Sequence record: NC_070957.1
Strand: one strand, 5' to 3'
DNA: 64,000 nucleotides
Shown here: in pieces, positions 2,933-56,747 of the stretch
Layout: each line of letters opens with the position of its first letter
Numbering within the stretch: position 1 is the stretch's first letter
Notes under the pieces: generated by a model
Databases searched by the model: none
Told to the model about the DNA's origin: nothing
The model's input: the letters and a program-made list of their open reading frames with translations, nothing else
Made by a program: the position numbers and the translations under genes

Positions 2933-3032
2933 AACGTTCTCCTGTAACTGGATCAAAAGATCCTTTTAGTAAAATACTAATCTTGTTATCTTAGGAGCGA
3001 ATTCCGCTATTAATTTAAACTTGGAGTAAGGT

Positions 3033-3641
3033 ATGCAGATCAGAAAGCAATTTGATCCCAACAACCTTCCCGAAGATATCAACAGTATCTATGATCAGAG
3101 TCGCTACATTCCGAAACGTAGCGGTGGACCGAACACTCCTAACGAATGGTTTTGGAGTGATCTCCATATTGACCATTTACCAGCGCTTAAGGCGCGTGGT
3201 TGGTTCGGTGCTTTACAAGAGTATCAAGATTACGTTGCATTCATCTGGGACACCCACGTTAAAGATATCGACACCATTCACTTGGTAGGCGATATCGCAT
3301 TAACATGGCAGGGGTTGCGTTGGATCAGCGAGAGGACTGGGAAGAAGATTCTCTATATGGGTAACCATGATACAGAACGCGAGAACTGTATTCGTGACCT
3401 CCTCTCTGTTTACGACGACATCAGGGGATTCTGGAAACACAAGAAAGGTTTCTACATTGGACATTGTCCAAGTCACCCTAGTGAGTTGCGTGGAAGAAGA
3501 ATGATCCATGGTCATACTCATACCAAGGTAATACAAGATCAGCGCTTCATCAATGTTGCTATCGATCTTCTTCCTAACGGTCCTGTTAACATGAAGGACT
3601 TGGTGTCAGGAGATTACCGTAGTTATCGAGACCCGGCATAA
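3033..3641 (+). CDS. Calcineurin-like metallophosphoesterase
   Basis: All five motifs present: SDLHIDH, GD, GNHD, GHCP, HGHTH. Confidence 0.9.
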   Translation: MQIRKQFDPNNLPEDINSIYDQSRYIPKRSGGPNTPNEWFWSDLHIDHLPALKARGWFGALQEYQDYVAFIWDTHVKDIDTIHLVGDIALTWQGLRWISERTGKKILYMGNHDTERENCIRDLLSVYDDIRGFWKHKKGFYIGHCPSHPSELRGRRMIHGHTHTKVIQDQRFINVAIDLLPNGPVNMKDLVSGDYRSYRDPA

Positions 3642-3644
3642 ACT

Positions 3645-3676
3645 AATCCATCACTGCCTTAGGGTGGTGATGGGTT
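3645..3676 (+). terminator. Rho-independent terminator
   Basis: aatccatcactgcc-tta-gggtggtgatgggtt hairpin after the stop. Confidence 0.7.
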
Positions 3677-3689
3677 GATCTCCATATCT

Positions 3690-3713
3690 TTTCAAGTAGA
3701 TATTATCTAAGTG
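3690..3713 (+). promoter_or_regulatory. Putative early promoter
   Basis: tttcaagtagatattatctaagtg motif match. Confidence 0.6.
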
Positions 3714-3745
3714 CATTCATAATCAAAATTGCTAAGGAGCAATAA

Positions 3746-4219
3746 ATGAATCTCTTAAATAAAGCACTCGTCAAAATGTTCATGTTGGCAGGTTGCCGGA
3801 GTCGAATCTGTGGGAGGGATCGTCAAGTCTTCATTCTGAAGAAATGTGTGGTGAAGATACCGGTGATGTCCAATGGCTGGTTTGAATTCGTCCGTGGTTA
3901 TTATTCCAATCTCAAAGAGATGGATAGCATCCGAGGTTACGAAGGTAATTTCCAGGAACATCTTCCAGAAATACTGGGGAGTTATTTATTTGGGTTAGTC
4001 GTCGTTTACAAGAAATATCGTGAGATTATGGATGGTAAAGATGACAACGAAACCGGCGACTTTGCCGAGTACACTAGGTTCCTAGGTAAACTTGATGACA
4101 TCCGGAGAAATGAGAAAAACTCAGAAAAATATATCTGGACTCAAGACACCAAGATCTTTAACTTCGGCTGGGATAAATATGGCCGGGTGGTAGTCATCGA
4201 TCTGGGGACACCTTACTAA
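3746..4219 (+). CDS. Miniature protein-kinase-like fold protein (paralog 1)
   Basis: GRDRQVF (G-loop), VVKIP (Lys), NLKEM (alphaC Glu), DTKIFN (catalytic loop), VIDLG (DFG-like). Confidence 0.7.
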   Translation: MNLLNKALVKMFMLAGCRSRICGRDRQVFILKKCVVKIPVMSNGWFEFVRGYYSNLKEMDSIRGYEGNFQEHLPEILGSYLFGLVVVYKKYREIMDGKDDNETGDFAEYTRFLGKLDDIRRNEKNSEKYIWTQDTKIFNFGWDKYGRVVVIDLGTPY

Positions 4220-4235
4220 CAAAGAGGGAATAATT

Positions 4236-4634
4236 ATGTCTGAAGTAAACATGAGTGAACTTATGAAGAAAGTTCATGAGAAAGGAATGAAAGCGTTTGA
4301 GGAAATGGACCATAAGGAGCGCTGGGCTTTCTGGACCGCAGTTTCCGTCCCTCCTCTCCGTTTTGTTCTTCGTAACGCAATGTCTTGCGAAGATAAGAAG
4401 TTGCGGTATGACCATCGTGACATTTCGTTGGTGCTGGGTTACGTATTGGGAATGTACAAGGTCGCTCCCATCCGTGACCTCATGAACAGTCAATCCATTC
4501 GCCTGGCCATTGTGGTTCTCCTGGACGCAATGACCGAGATGAAAGAAATGGATACGGTCATGGATGACATGGTCAATATCGCGGCCAAAACGATGAACAC
4601 CATCGACAACAAGATACTCTACTATTACCAATAG
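4236..4634 (+). CDS. Hypothetical helical protein
   Basis: GAGGG RBS; 132 aa ORF in the operon. Confidence 0.75.
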   Translation: MSEVNMSELMKKVHEKGMKAFEEMDHKERWAFWTAVSVPPLRFVLRNAMSCEDKKLRYDHRDISLVLGYVLGMYKVAPIRDLMNSQSIRLAIVVLLDAMTEMKEMDTVMDDMVNIAAKTMNTIDNKILYYYQ

Positions 4635-4642
4635 GCGGGTGT

Positions 4643-5032
4643 ATGAAACCTGAAGTCATTGGAACAACTCGCCACGTAAGGTTATTCAAACATTTCGTGG
4701 TAAAGTTTCCTAGGATGACAACGTGGTATGAGAAAGGCTTTAATCTAAGAGTCTTTCTCAATAACCTTTATCTCAATCGTAGAGAGCGCAGATTGGCAAA
4801 GAAGTATAAGGGAGCCGAAGGTATTCCTCATATTTACTTTGCAGACCCATTCGGTTTTGTTGTTGTAATGAAACGTTATAACACTAACCTGAAGACTGAA
4901 CAATTCTGCGCACTTTATAATTCACTACTCGACAGGACTGAAATAGATCCTGAATTTTGGGAAGATGATTCGACTGTCCCTAACTTCGGTTTAACTGAGG
5001 ACGGGAAACTTGTTAAAATTGATTTGGGGTAA
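4643..5032 (+). CDS. Miniature protein-kinase-like fold protein (paralog 2)
   Basis: GTTRHV, VVKFP, NRRERR, FVVVMKRY hinge, DSTVPN, KIDLG at the very C-terminus. Confidence 0.7.
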   Translation: MKPEVIGTTRHVRLFKHFVVKFPRMTTWYEKGFNLRVFLNNLYLNRRERRLAKKYKGAEGIPHIYFADPFGFVVVMKRYNTNLKTEQFCALYNSLLDRTEIDPEFWEDDSTVPNFGLTEDGKLVKIDLG

Positions 5033-5035
5033 CTA

Positions 5036-5392
5036 ATGCAACACTGTACTTTTGATACTGTAGGTGAATTGGTAGGTGTCTTAAATGGTCTCGGGAAACC
5101 CGAAGCCATGGTGGATAGCTTTTATGTCTATGAACGACAGGAAAGAAACTACATCGTGATGGAACAAACTGATGAAGGTGAAACTTCTTTCAACTTTGCT
5201 CCAGTTCGTCACCGTCACCCTTATCAAGGTTATGACGATATTGTAATCTCGTCCTCACTCACAGTGGGTAAGTTTATCGAGATGTTAGAAACTTTCCCGC
5301 TGGATACGCACATCAAGTACATCCGGTTGAAAGGTGCCGACAACATGGTGGCAATGAACGTTGAAGAAGACGGCATTGTAATCCACGATTAA
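5036..5392 (+). CDS. Hypothetical protein with an internal TVG(E/K)xxxxL duplication
   Basis: TVGELVGVLNGL and TVGKFIEMLETFP. Confidence 0.7.
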   Translation: MQHCTFDTVGELVGVLNGLGKPEAMVDSFYVYERQERNYIVMEQTDEGETSFNFAPVRHRHPYQGYDDIVISSSLTVGKFIEMLETFPLDTHIKYIRLKGADNMVAMNVEEDGIVIHD

Positions 5393-5402
5393 GGAAACTG
5401 TC

Positions 5403-5783
5403 ATGAACAATAAACATTACTACATTCCTGAGCCTAAAACCTTAGGAGTATTTGCCCGGGCATTGGAAAATCATCTCATCACCAAACTGGCCCAAGATAC
5501 AATGGGTCATGTCAACTATCCAGCACAAGGTAAGTTTCTGAATCCTGGTGCTTATTCATCCCCAGGACTTAGTGCAATGTCATCCAAGGATGACACTATG
5601 TTCAGGGTGGAAGAAGAGAATGGGTACGATCTCGTATCCAGGTACATGGAGACCATGGATCCAAATTGGGAAGGCGAACCTTATATTCCTCCCTCCACCA
5701 GGACACCCCGTGATCTCCTGGAAATGAAAACCCACGGGGCTTTGAAGCGCAGCTTCCAACCCCCTAAACGTACCAAGTACTAA
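5403..5783 (+). CDS. Hypothetical protein
   Basis: AAGGA RBS; operon context. Confidence 0.7.
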   Translation: MNNKHYYIPEPKTLGVFARALENHLITKLAQDTMGHVNYPAQGKFLNPGAYSSPGLSAMSSKDDTMFRVEEENGYDLVSRYMETMDPNWEGEPYIPPSTRTPRDLLEMKTHGALKRSFQPPKRTKY

Positions 5784-5812
5784 CCCGCCTCGATAATAAT
5801 AAAGGAAATGAA

Positions 5813-6175
5813 ATGTTTGACTTTTCTGGTGTAAAGAAGAAGTTCCGTAAGAGTTTGAAGAAGCGTTACGGCACTATTGTCCCGATGGTTGTTGGTGGTG
5901 ACAAACAGATCTACAACTTCCTGAGTATGTTCGCTGGACCGCAGCATTTCCGGCGTGTTAAGTTCCAGTGGAGACACGAACGGGCACCGTTCTGTTTCCG
6001 ACCGGTACTCGACGGATACCAGTGCGTCAAAACAGGTTTGATCATCCAAGCTGACAATGTGTTAGCAATGACCAATCAATTTGAAACAATGGCCAGGACT
6101 GCCAAGGAAGAAGGGAAGCTCGAAGAGTTGACTAAACGCCGGGTCAGTTACGAGCTCAATCACAAACGTTTTTAA
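5813..6175 (+). CDS. Hypothetical protein
   Basis: AAGGA RBS; operon context. Confidence 0.7.
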   Translation: MFDFSGVKKKFRKSLKKRYGTIVPMVVGGDKQIYNFLSMFAGPQHFRRVKFQWRHERAPFCFRPVLDGYQCVKTGLIIQADNVLAMTNQFETMARTAKEEGKLEELTKRRVSYELNHKRF

Positions 6176-6186
6176 TAGGAATACCC

Positions 6187-6606
6187 ATGAACGCCTATCT
6201 CAAGAGCTGCATCAACGACGTTAAGTTTTCGATGCTGTTAAAACGCAGACTTACCTGGCACTGGATAATGGTTAACATCGTCATACCGGTGCGGTGTTAT
6301 TTCAGAGCCAGGGAAATTGTCTATGTCGACATGGGTGTGTGGTTTACCTATAAAGGAGTAACCATGTGTCCGGTCGAATGGAAACTCCAACCCAAATGGT
6401 TCCCATGGACATTGGGTCCTTCCCACAAAGGTTATCGGGTTCATGGTTACAACAAACCCTTTGAACTCACTAGCGAAGTAGAAGTCATGTTGTATTGCGA
6501 ACAGCTCGCATACCGCAACAGTCGTTTACTTAAATCGGCCAATACACTCACCAAGAAACTTGATGAGATGGTGGCTAATATGGAAAAACAACTTCTCGAA
6601 GGTTAA
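6187..6606 (+). CDS. Hypothetical protein
   Basis: AGGA RBS; operon context. Confidence 0.7.
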   Translation: MNAYLKSCINDVKFSMLLKRRLTWHWIMVNIVIPVRCYFRAREIVYVDMGVWFTYKGVTMCPVEWKLQPKWFPWTLGPSHKGYRVHGYNKPFELTSEVEVMLYCEQLAYRNSRLLKSANTLTKKLDEMVANMEKQLLEG

Positions 6607-6607
6607 C

Positions 6608-7990
6608 ATGACCGACGAACAATATATCAATGAAGAGGTAAGTGAAATGAACCAACATGATAACACGTTCCAGGTTGGACTCCGCCGTCTCCAAATCGCC
6701 ATTTCCGGTGGTTGGGGTGAAAAGGAGCGTCAGATCGCTAAGGCGGCAACAGAGCTCTATATGAAGAACAAGCGCGAGTTCTTGCTCTGCAAAGACCCTG
6801 TTGCGTTAGCAGGAATGATGGGTAATACTGAGCGTTACCCTGAACTCGAGGGACTCCTGGAAACAGGGACTATCGCAACCAATGCAATCCTTCACGCATT
6901 TGTATCCACCACTCAATTTAACTACAAGTATGATGAGTGGGCCGGCGATACCATGGATTACTGGGGTGTCAATCCCGGTACCATCAAGAACAAGTTTGAA
7001 CACTGGTACCTGGAACTCATTCGTCAGCTGATGACTGAGACCTCCAAGGATGATCGCACTGGAACAGGGACTCGTTCCCTGACCACCGCCGTGTACAAAC
7101 ACGATCTTCGTGAATCGTTCCCTCTGCTCCGTAGCCGATTCCTGAAACCGGAGAACCCTGGTAAGGAATACATCTGGATGCTTTCCGGTTCCAACAACGA
7201 AAAGGAACTGGCTGCAATGGGTGTTCCCTTCTGGAGCGAGTTTGCCGATGAGACCGGTGATCTGGGTCCTGTGTACGGTTACCTGTGGCGCTACTGGCCT
7301 AATGGTGACGGCACCACCACCGACCAAATCGAATACGTTCTGGAGACTCTCCGCAAGTCCCCTGAAAGTCGACGTGCTGTGGTCAGTTGTTGGCACCCTG
7401 GGTTGATCCCCGATAGCAAGACTCCGCCCAAGGAAAACTACAAGGTAGGGAAACAAGCACTGACTCCGTGTCACTATGCTTTCCAATTCCTGGCAAGTCC
7501 CATCGGGTTCTGTGAGCGTCTGGCGTGGGCTAAACAACACAAGCCCGAACAGATCGCATTCCTGTATCCCGTGACCGGGTATGACTGGACCGAAAGGACA
7601 GAAGAAGCAATGAATCGGATTGGAGTACCCAAGTACTACCTGGACCTCCAATTCAACATGCGGAGCTCCGATACTGTTCTGGGTCTTCCGGCAAACTTCA
7701 ACTTCTACGGGCACATGTGTCACGCATTCGCCAAAGAGTTGAACATGGTTCCTCGTTTCCTGTCCTACACCGGGACTGACGTCCATTTGTACGTCAACCA
7801 TATCAAGGGTATGAAAGAAGTCTTTGATTGGGTGAAACAAAACAAAGAGAAAGTCTTTGACGAAGTATCCCAAATCAAAATCGTGGGTGAGTTCGAAAAC
7901 CTGTACGACATGAAGCCTGAAAACTTCGAGTACATCAACTACAGCCGTGAGCTGGTCGGTCCGGCCAAACGCTTCCCGGTTGCTGTTTAA
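6608..7990 (+). CDS. thyA: Thymidylate synthase with N-terminal extension
   Basis: DRTGTGT, FPLL, GDLGPVYG, DQI, SRRAVV, LTPCHY (catalytic Cys), RSSD, GLPAN, DVHLYVNH. Confidence 0.95.
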   Translation: MTDEQYINEEVSEMNQHDNTFQVGLRRLQIAISGGWGEKERQIAKAATELYMKNKREFLLCKDPVALAGMMGNTERYPELEGLLETGTIATNAILHAFVSTTQFNYKYDEWAGDTMDYWGVNPGTIKNKFEHWYLELIRQLMTETSKDDRTGTGTRSLTTAVYKHDLRESFPLLRSRFLKPENPGKEYIWMLSGSNNEKELAAMGVPFWSEFADETGDLGPVYGYLWRYWPNGDGTTTDQIEYVLETLRKSPESRRAVVSCWHPGLIPDSKTPPKENYKVGKQALTPCHYAFQFLASPIGFCERLAWAKQHKPEQIAFLYPVTGYDWTERTEEAMNRIGVPKYYLDLQFNMRSSDTVLGLPANFNFYGHMCHAFAKELNMVPRFLSYTGTDVHLYVNHIKGMKEVFDWVKQNKEKVFDEVSQIKIVGEFENLYDMKPENFEYINYSRELVGPAKRFPVAV

Positions 7991-11512: not shown

Positions 11513-11525
11513 TTTGTCTATAGTT

Positions 11526-11549
11526 TTTGAAGCAGATATTATTAGGGTG
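11526..11549 (+). promoter_or_regulatory. Putative early promoter
   Basis: tttgaagcagatattattagggtg motif match. Confidence 0.6.
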
Positions 11550-30095: not shown

Positions 30096-30598
30096 TGTGG
30101 TTTGATGAAACCGGTAAACCGGTAATGGAAGATCAGGTAGCCATGCTTATCGATGCAATCGCACTCGAAAAGATGAATGAGCTCCAGGTCAATGGTGATG
30201 TGTCTAAATTCTGGACTGTCGTCTCTGACACGATTAACTCTTATCCGGTCGCTGCATTTATGCAGGCGTACAAAGACTTCACCTTTTATCTCCTGAACGA
30301 TCCTTCGATGTGTAAAGAGCTTTTCGACTATACAACTTGTCTGGTTGTTCAGCTCCGTACGAAACCCTACTACACGAAGGCGGTTGAAAGCAGTCTCTCT
30401 GTACTGACCCAGATCAAGAATCACGATGCGTTTGCTGACGTACTCGATGAAAACGTCCAGGGTCTGGATGTGATCGCAGAGTTGTTGATGTTTATCCGAC
30501 TCAACCATCGTGTGATCGAACGTCGCCTCATCGAGATGGCAGGTGGCCAGGTGAAACTCCCTCGACCTTCATCGAAACAGGATGGAGGTGAAAGATGA
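30095..30598 (+). CDS. Conserved hypothetical protein
   Basis: TGATG coupling; 167 aa. Confidence 0.75.
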   Translation: MWFDETGKPVMEDQVAMLIDAIALEKMNELQVNGDVSKFWTVVSDTINSYPVAAFMQAYKDFTFYLLNDPSMCKELFDYTTCLVVQLRTKPYYTKAVESSLSVLTQIKNHDAFADVLDENVQGLDVIAELLMFIRLNHRVIERRLIEMAGGQVKLPRPSSKQDGGER

Positions 30599-31323
30599 TC
30601 TCCATCTACACCGAGTTAGGGTCGTTGTTCGATGAACGAAGAATGATTCTATGTAAACTTGCTCGTGAAACTGTCGGATTTAAATTCGACTGGGTTCGTA
30701 ATTTTCAGCAAGTGTATCAAGAACGTCTCTACGATGTTTTTGAGTATCCCGAATTCGGGATTACCGATGAACGTTATAAAGAACGGTTTGAGCGTAGAAG
30801 TAAGGAAGATTTCGCGGATCGCCTCGAGAACTTCCTTTACCCGTCGAAGGTATGTCGGGATATGTTCAATATCGTCCGAGAGTATGAATTCGGTGTGGGT
30901 AAGCTCCTCTCTGTTTCCAAGTTCACTGTGACTGTCAACACATGGCCATATGAACTGAACGACGAGGAGCAAGCGGAATTGATCGGTGCGATCAAGGGAA
31001 CTGTTAGTTGGAGTTTCGACGTCAACTTGGTTCACCTTCCTCCCCAACAACTCATCCCGCACTTCCTTCATGGTTTCGATTACGTGTTCAAATACGACTA
31101 CATGCTTTCACCTCACATGGGTAAGTATTGGGAGTTGTACGAGACCTCACTTCCTAGCAGAACCAAAATCGTGGTTCCTGGAGTGTTCAAAGGTAAAGTG
31201 ACCCTTACAGATGGAATGGAAGCGGATTCGCCGAAAGACCTCATCTTTAAGTTAAGTGCATACCAGGGCGGTAAGGTTACCTGGATACCGTGCGATAAAA
31301 GCATTTATGACTCATACTCATAA
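30595..31323 (+). CDS. Conserved hypothetical protein (possibly degenerate HAD-like fold)
   Basis: ATGA overlap; N-terminal IYTELGSLFDER resembles a DxD..LDTR motif lacking the Asp residues. Confidence 0.7.
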   Translation: MISIYTELGSLFDERRMILCKLARETVGFKFDWVRNFQQVYQERLYDVFEYPEFGITDERYKERFERRSKEDFADRLENFLYPSKVCRDMFNIVREYEFGVGKLLSVSKFTVTVNTWPYELNDEEQAELIGAIKGTVSWSFDVNLVHLPPQQLIPHFLHGFDYVFKYDYMLSPHMGKYWELYETSLPSRTKIVVPGVFKGKVTLTDGMEADSPKDLIFKLSAYQGGKVTWIPCDKSIYDSYS

Positions 31324-31908: not shown

Positions 31909-31950
31909 TGTATGCTCCAGAATGTCTAAAGTTTTAACTGTTCTAAACTT

Positions 31951-31974
31951 TTTCAAGCAGATATTATCATGTTG
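31951..31974 (+). promoter_or_regulatory. Putative early promoter
   Basis: tttcaagcagatattatcatgttg motif match. Confidence 0.6.
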
Positions 31975-56691: not shown

Positions 56692-56723
56692 ATAAACCTT
56701 TATTATTTCTTTGCTCTATATCT

Positions 56724-56747
56724 TTTCAAATCGATATTATTAAGGTG
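56724..56747 (+). promoter_or_regulatory. Putative early promoter
   Basis: tttcaaatcgatattattaaggtg, the closest match to consensus. Confidence 0.65.

Follow-up and report, generated by a model that had tools for sequence, protein, structure and literature searches.

Two small genes of Aeromonas phage D3 (NC_070957 / MN102098), gp085 and gp083, are the subject of this analysis. D3 is a jumbo phage of Ludhianavirus with a genome of 262,372 bp and A. hydrophila as its host, and its gene content includes split multisubunit RNA polymerase genes, GroEL and many nucleotide-metabolism genes. The window, that is, the whole stretch of 64,000 nucleotides analysed here (from record NC_070957.1), shows 100% identity to D3 over bases 3000-6200 and 95-99% identity to phages D9, D6 and LAh10 over the same segment. 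Within it, gp085 occupies positions 3746-4219 (+ strand, 157 aa) and gp083 occupies positions 4643-5032 (+ strand, 129 aa); both are labelled 'hypothetical protein' in RefSeq. An earlier note on this DNA, made from the sequence alone, had read the two ORFs as paralogous minimal kinase-fold proteins, first and third in an operon. Both open reading frames (ORFs) are present as it claimed, and they are indeed the first and third genes of a closely packed + strand row, which extends from gp085 to a thymidylate-synthase homologue.

The kinase motifs quoted in the earlier note were all found again, in the order Gly-loop, beta3 Lys, alphaC Glu, hinge, D-x4-N and I-D-L-G. In gp085, the Gly-loop runs from G23 to V28 (3812-3829), the beta3 Lys is K37 (3854-3856), the alphaC Glu is E58 (3917-3919), and the catalytic loop extends from D134 to N139 (4145-4162); the I-D-L-G motif at residues 151-154 (4196-4207) is followed by three residues and the stop codon. 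The corresponding elements of gp083 are G7-V12 (4661-4678), K21 (4703-4705), E48 (4784-4786), D109-N114 (4967-4984) and I-D-L-G at residues 126-129 (5018-5029), where the Gly is followed immediately by the stop codon (5030-5032). The chain of both proteins thus ends at the equivalent of the DFG motif, three and zero residues past its Gly, respectively. The two proteins share 31% identity over 144 columns (BLASTP, E 6e-14), and by this measure they are ancient paralogues. Both match the same PHROG family, phrog_4301, at profile positions 45-168 of 225 (E 4.9e-14 for gp085 and 2.1e-10 for gp083). Between D3 and LAh10, gp085 differs by 21 synonymous changes and 1 non-synonymous change, and gp083 by 11 synonymous and 0 non-synonymous changes, with the stop codon kept in each; these codon changes show that both genes are under purifying selection.

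Word-index protein searches returned only two matches for each protein. An exhaustive hidden Markov model (HMM) search of 1.84 billion representative sequences (threshold E<=1e-3) gave a family of 157 cluster representatives. Most of them have a length of 115-135 aa and are matched up to their last residue. Of these, 147 were retained in the family alignment (A2), to which the family shares and counts below refer and whose columns are numbered as in gp083. The tail beyond the DFG-like Gly is at most 1 aa long in 81 of the 147 and at most 3 aa in 94, and it exceeds 40 aa in only 12. Since the tail is this short in 94 of the 147, the truncation is neither a peculiarity of D3 nor an artefact, and ending at the DFG equivalent is the normal architecture of the family. 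The longer members share a short extra motif past the DFG-like Gly, after which their sequences diverge. These C-terminal extensions were considered as remnants of a kinase C-lobe and rejected as such, having neither a Pfam match nor a kinase match, and therefore no intermediate with a recognisable C-lobe is seen among them.

Conservation in the alignment is concentrated at the positions expected from the motifs. In the Gly-loop, G7 and R10 are invariant (100%) and V12 is kept in 95% of sequences; the beta3 K21 is likewise invariant, the alphaC E48 is Glu in 99%, and P23, N45 and G71 are conserved in 98%, 96% and 97%, respectively. In the catalytic loop, position 109 is Asp in 85% and Glu in 15%, position 114 is Asn in 86% and Ser in 12%, and G116 is kept in 93%, whereas the DFG-like motif has D127 in 99%, Y128 in 87% and G129 in 77%. 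Because the same columns are conserved across 147 family sequences, the motifs of gp085 and gp083 are not due to chance. A strict catalytic set (K, E, D, N, D) is complete in 120 of the 147. The two variable catalytic-loop positions covary: the pair at 109 and 114 is D...N in 122 sequences, E...S in 17, E...N in 4 and D...S in none. Such covariation is the compensatory pattern expected from selection on a working active site, and the E/S subfamily (17/147) is best described, from these pairings, as a compensated active-site variant. The family is also basic, with a median pI of 9.1.

Evidence that these proteins have a kinase-like fold comes from both sequence profiles and predicted structures. 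When the family profile was compared with all PDB sequences, the matches were almost only protein kinases. The best was TTK/Mps1 (E 0.006); KSR, PknB-like, CK1, Aurora and PknG kinases and one APH-type enzyme were also matched, and the alignment spans the helix ahead of the catalytic loop, the catalytic loop itself and the DFG motif. A 209-aa homologue from a Ralstonia phage matches KIN28, MAPK9 and PKA as far as the DFG motif and not past it. Searches of the PDB with gp085 or gp083 as single sequences returned nothing relevant, and Pfam matches in the family are confined to sub-threshold hits to ABC1, PIP49_C and APH in 7 of the 147 members. The PADLOC and NCBIfam models gave no match to either protein; one long relative weakly matches the PD-T4-6 kinase model at the catalytic loop and DFG (E 0.0035).

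AlphaFold2, run with the family alignment, returned confident models of both proteins, with a predicted local distance difference test (pLDDT) score of 93.9 and a predicted template modelling (pTM) score of 0.84 for gp083, and 92.5 and 0.85 for gp085. Each model consists of three N-terminal strands, a long helix, two strands, a long and a short helix and a final beta-hairpin, and stops after the second C-lobe strand; gp085 has an additional N-terminal helix (residues 3-14). In Foldseek searches of the PDB, the top 50 matches of both models were almost all kinase-like folds, with a probability of about 1 and a template modelling (TM) score over the query of 0.45-0.65. The matches of gp083 include Rio2, Bud32/PRPK, AceK, WbdD, phosphorylase kinase, MLKL, Src, APH and ArkI, together with a few entries of the structurally related SAICAR synthetase, and those of gp085 include RIOK2, OspG, capreomycin phosphotransferase, WbdD, PpkA and PknB. 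In the BFVD collection, the best fold matches were family members in other phages, one of which, from Ralstonia phage RP12, is already named 'Protein kinase domain-containing protein'. The earlier note had named structures without a kinase-like fold as the outcome that would count against it; this comparison was made, and the predicted folds are kinase-like. The note's further claim, that the activation segment and the later C-lobe helices are missing, also holds, as subdomains VIII-XI are absent from both models. In short, gp085 and gp083 are predicted with high confidence to be kinase-like cores composed of Hanks subdomains I-VII only. Their fold and catalytic motifs place them in the kinase-like superfamily, but their architecture falls short of a complete kinase domain.

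Comparison with named kinases shows how far this likeness goes. Hanks-type kinases such as TTK/Mps1, PknB and phosphorylase kinase have the same order of elements as the family, from the Gly-loop to DFG. TTK, the best sequence match, aligns with the family column for column in the catalytic loop and DFG, while phosphorylase kinase matches the gp083 fold with a TM score of 0.65 over the query, and PknB and PpkA are also fold matches. However, Hanks-type kinases are at least about 250 aa long and have an activation segment, alphaF and alphaG-I, whereas the family members are about 120 aa long and lack subdomains VIII-XI; unlike these kinases, they also have an invariant Arg in the Gly-loop. The best Foldseek matches are RIO2 and Bud32/PRPK (1zar, E 2.6e-3, query TM 0.58; 3enh; 6g18_v), which, like the family, are without a classical activation loop. 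They nevertheless keep C-lobe helices past the metal-binding loop, where the family chain ends, as well as extra N-terminal elements, and the TM score over the target is only 0.17-0.36. Membership in the RIO or Bud32 families was therefore rejected, as there is no sequence signature (no match to the Pfam RIO or Kae1-associated kinase models) and no C-lobe helices follow the metal-binding loop.

Two smaller enzymes are closer in size. OspG (4q5e_A, a chain of 168 aa), a bacterial secreted effector that ranks among the smallest solved kinase folds, is the second-best fold match of gp085 (E 9e-4). It was solved bound to an E2-ubiquitin conjugate and offers a model of a minimal kinase stabilised by its binding partner; it has C-lobe helices past the DFG equivalent and no sequence match to the family. 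ArkI (8yv5_B, 173 aa) is a weak fold match of gp083 (E 0.067) with no match at the sequence level. This archaeal tRNA 2'-kinase of the AQ578 family is a small enzyme derived from eukaryotic-type protein kinases (ePKs), which keeps subdomains I-V, VIa/b, VII, IX and XI, lacks subdomains VIII and X, and has a basic patch for RNA (PMC9095486). Membership in ArkI/AQ578 was rejected, since the family is without subdomains IX and XI and its basic pI is only a loose likeness. Among phage kinases, T7K acts on host proteins and is a precedent for promiscuous anti-defence phosphorylation; it carries D-P-V in place of DFG and, at its C-terminus, a DNA-binding shut-off domain (PMC13645617). The earlier note had invoked kinases of this T7 gp0.7 type, but gp085 and gp083 do not belong to them: their only PHROG match is phrog_4301, and the family has D-[Y/L]-G and then ends, where T7K has D-P-V. 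Entries named 'protein kinase' from T7-like phages appear in BFVD only as weak fold matches (E 2e-3), ranked below family members.

The family is widely distributed among phages. A tblastn search with one typical member found it in 126 phage records, which include T4-like phages, jumbo phages and siphophages of Escherichia, Pseudomonas, Aeromonas, Erwinia, Klebsiella, Salmonella, Ralstonia and other hosts. A motif scan of a viral collection gave ten relatives, and the clusters that were examined lie on metagenomic contigs of phage-like size. Two narrow motif scans of 185,579 bacterial and archaeal species, each represented by one genome, turned up no cellular relative, and the family is apparently phage-restricted. 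With regard to previous description, phrog_4301 is the family itself; its function is unannotated in PHROG, and the profile of 225 columns also covers extensions absent from most members. Four depositors have already named family members as serine/threonine or 'STE family' kinases, while literature searches found no published description of the family. Phage PaulHMueller, which we take to belong to the BASEL collection, carries a weak relative (31.9% identity, E 0.07). A study of T7K searched the BASEL phages for protein kinases, and only T7K homologues were studied, with P1vir and its unrelated Doc kinase added for comparison (PMC13645617). The term 'protein kinase' does not occur in a comparative survey of jumbo phages (PMC7824862).

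The genomic contexts of the family are diverse. In Dhakavirus, a group of T4-like phages, the gene lies directly upstream of the RNA ligase 2 gene rnlB (JS10, locus L005, 2977-4354), and in the Dhakavirus phage NC-G (locus L021, 2492-3869) it overlaps the rnlB start, which suggests co-translation with the RNA-repair enzyme. In some Tequatrovirus phages it is found near a tRNA cluster, in phage 2L372X between nrd genes, in a Pseudomonas siphophage between RIIA and a hydrolase, and in 121Q and AH04 among small unannotated genes. Two metagenomic viral contigs (L011, 673-1047; L012, 2066-2449) have it between the large terminase and a P22-like portal, an interval that is a typical site of accessory ('moron') genes; others have it beside a GIY-YIG homing endonuclease or beside an FkbM methyltransferase. 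An RNA-repair nucleotidyltransferase of the RlaP type is located two genes downstream of one long member. BLASTP among 26 neighbour proteins (those of D3, five in number, and the rest from the loci of nine other phages) revealed no conserved neighbour, and the genes downstream of eight other family members are mutually unrelated. Copy number also varies. A number of related Aeromonas jumbo phages carry just one copy, AhC3_1 has two paralogues 3 kb apart, and PS1 has three copies, the third of which (record positions 30341-30703) lies about 6 kb from an adjacent pair, so that the family appears to expand by duplication within jumbo phages. From these contexts, the family gene is best seen as a stand-alone, mobile accessory gene.

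Two suggestions of the earlier note do not survive this comparison. One was that the gene between the paralogues, gp084 (4236-4634, + strand, 132 aa; no Pfam, PHROG or PDB match), might be a partner or scaffold. By tblastn, gp084 occurs only in the four Ludhianavirus genomes D3, D9, D6 and LAh10; in phages ZPAH34 and PS1 the paralogues are directly adjacent, and most phages carry one family member with unrelated neighbours. As gp084 is a lineage-specific insertion, it is not a conserved partner. The other was that the locus was a candidate for an undescribed system. What it contains is two copies of a stand-alone accessory gene, not a multi-gene system.

On this basis we favour, with moderate confidence, the view that the family corresponds to that half of a Hanks-type kinase which binds the nucleotide and transfers the phosphate, and that it is active, unregulated and host-directed, with a host protein as the likeliest acceptor. 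Such a half kinase would consist of an N-lobe (Gly-loop, beta3 Lys, alphaC Glu, beta4-5), a hinge, a long helix, the catalytic loop, a beta-hairpin and the Mg-binding D-[Y/L/F]-G. Mg-ATP would be bound between the two sheets, and its gamma-phosphate would be passed to a hydroxyl acceptor. The active site would be open and unregulated, because there is neither an activation segment nor a substrate platform formed by P+1 and alphaF-alphaG. A non-canonical surface, basic for the most part, could select the target, or the protein could dock onto the target itself in the manner of partner-stabilised minimal kinases. A protein acceptor is favoured because, by sequence, the family is closest to Ser/Thr protein kinases and because T7K provides a precedent. 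That the gene lies scattered among the small accessory genes of numerous virulent phages suggests that it would have a stand-alone, host-directed role, in takeover or counter-defence. A stronger form of the proposal, in which a self-sufficient active 'half kinase' of about 120 aa is used by many unrelated virulent phages against host macromolecules, is put forward tentatively, as possible rather than probable; if this is true, no smaller kinase-like enzyme is known, and the family would form a new class of enzymes by which phages modify their hosts.

Several points weigh against an active half kinase. The alphaF helix and the C-lobe are regarded as a scaffold that no protein-kinase-like enzyme can do without, and we are not aware of any kinase-like enzyme that functions in the absence of an alphaF helix. 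Even the smallest named fold matches, ArkI (173 aa) and OspG (168 aa), keep later C-lobe helices. The E-values of the family profile against solved kinases are marginal (0.006-0.02), no Pfam kinase model matches gp085 or gp083 at threshold, and the AlphaFold2 models are monomer predictions. Furthermore, only 63% of the family have the Lys two residues past the catalytic Asp (K111), gp083 itself having Thr there, and the contexts of the family genes point to no particular substrate.

The missing half of the kinase domain can also be read differently. The family might phosphorylate a non-protein acceptor, such as RNA (at a 2'-OH or 5'-OH, ArkI-like), a nucleotide or nucleoside, or another small molecule, for which none of the peptide-binding elements absent from the family would be needed. 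The basic character of the family would fit such an acceptor, as would the appearance of ArkI, a small ePK-like RNA kinase, among the fold matches; but the ArkI match is low-ranked, and ArkI keeps subdomains IX and XI. Some neighbours point the same way: rnlB is adjoined or overlapped in Dhakavirus, the RlaP-type gene lies near a long member, the D3 and ZPAH34 genes are a few kb upstream of thyA, the 2L372X gene stands between nrd genes, and in D3 a calcineurin-like phosphoesterase is encoded directly upstream. However, the adjacency to rnlB is limited to one phage lineage, and other contexts are unrelated. The best sequence matches are Ser/Thr protein kinases, and in known small-molecule kinases of the kinase-like fold the substrate pocket is made of C-lobe helices, which are absent here. 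We therefore consider a non-protein acceptor unlikely. Loss of the substrate-binding half would also fit a role limited to nucleotide binding or hydrolysis, in which the family acts without phosphorylating a substrate, as an ATPase or ATP switch (as in RIO and Bud32), a nucleotide sink, or a kinase-mimic decoy that binds a host factor. The best fold matches, Rio2 and Bud32/PRPK, are atypical kinases generally held to act as ATPases on ribonucleoprotein complexes, and the strict catalytic set is incomplete in 27 of the 147 sequences. Yet the columns of the catalytic base and of Mg binding are kept and covary, which would be needless in a pure binder or decoy, and the Lys, Glu and DFG Asp are 99-100% conserved, so that this reading seems rather improbable to us.

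A third possibility is a split kinase, in which the C-lobe is supplied in trans by gp084 or by gp082 (5036-5392, + strand, 118 aa; phrog_13970, function unannotated), or in which the stop codon of gp083 is read through. The layout invites it, in that gp084 lies between the paralogues and gp082 starts one codon past the gp083 stop in the same reading frame (5030-5038), the two together having about the size of a kinase domain. Of eight other loci with annotated coordinates, PS1 alone shows this in-frame arrangement, which looks like a coincidence. As trans C-lobes, gp082 and gp084 were rejected, since neither matches a solved structure by sequence (the pieces were searched apart), whether kinase or not, or a Pfam family. 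In addition, gp084 is confined to Ludhianavirus, the C-terminal domain of gp082 (about 60 aa) is found at distant loci in the Aeromonas phages PS1, ACP1 and AVP1, and the same end residue is seen in 81 of the 147 clusters whatever the neighbour. The split kinase is thus largely refuted and appears very improbable. It is hardly credible, finally, that the motifs are a chance resemblance without a kinase-like fold. The lack of a Pfam kinase match at threshold and the empty single-sequence PDB searches would agree with it, but the profile search, two confident models, fold searches in two libraries and the conservation of columns all concur in a kinase-like fold.

The family matters because its proteins, known from over 150 sequence clusters and over 120 sequenced phages, keep the catalytic residues under purifying selection and yet end at DFG. 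It may define the smallest kinase-like catalytic unit known. If it is active, the minimal catalytic unit of the kinase fold would be redefined, and the family would provide a very small kinase scaffold free of regulators; phage-host conflict would then involve, in addition to T7 gp0.7, a phage kinase of a second and unrelated kind. Should its role be limited to binding or hydrolysing ATP, the family shows how a kinase core can be turned into a nucleotide module. Either way, an unannotated PHROG of T4-like phages, jumbo phages and Pseudomonas siphophages gains a name and a testable hypothesis.

The remaining features of the D3 locus are described here for completeness. Directly upstream of both kinase-like genes is gp086 (3033-3641, + strand, 202 aa), a calcineurin-like metallophosphoesterase that matches phrog_547 'phosphoesterase' (E 3e-39) and falls under the cut-off for Pfam Metallophos_2 (E 0.018); its database labels are phosphoesterase and putative Ser/Thr phosphatase (GenBank). 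Its tie to gp085 and gp083 is one of position, and the phosphatase-kinase-kinase neighbourhood (gp086-gp085-gp083) is seen only in the Ludhianavirus group. An inverted repeat read from the sequence directly after the gp086 stop (3649-3674, + strand) could form a hairpin, a possible transcript end or processing site, which the terminator scan did not detect. Ahead of gp085, where the earlier note had placed an early promoter motif, lies a 20-nt, AT-rich, promoter-like element at 3687-3706 (+ strand), 40 nt upstream of the start codon. It occurs five times in the window against 0.03 expected, at 356-375, 3687-3706, 11523-11542, 31948-31967 and 56721-56740, all on the + strand. Because D3 encodes its own multisubunit RNA polymerase, this motif may represent a phage-specific promoter class. 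A generic scan of the window for sigma-70 promoters and intrinsic terminators gave results at chance level, a 14-nt motif in the window was not above chance, and no tRNA genes were found in the window.

Three further observations concern individual genes of the row. In gp085, residues 14-17 (3785-3796), at the end of the N-terminal helix, form a lipobox-like L-A-G-C, which is probably a coincidence because the orthologues P0002 and P0007 are without the motif and AlphaFold packs the segment as a helix. The start of gp084 is annotated inconsistently: in the LAh10 record (locus L025, 1196-1735) its orthologue is given an upstream start, with an overlap of about 125 nt with the gp085 orthologue, whereas a later start is used in D3 and D6. 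The thymidylate-synthase homologue (6560-7990; RefSeq start 6608) is unusually long, at 460-476 aa, and its match to Pfam Thymidylat_synt begins at residue 150, which leaves an unexplained N-terminal extension of about 150 aa; this long homologue could be a nucleotide-modifying variant instead of a plain ThyA.

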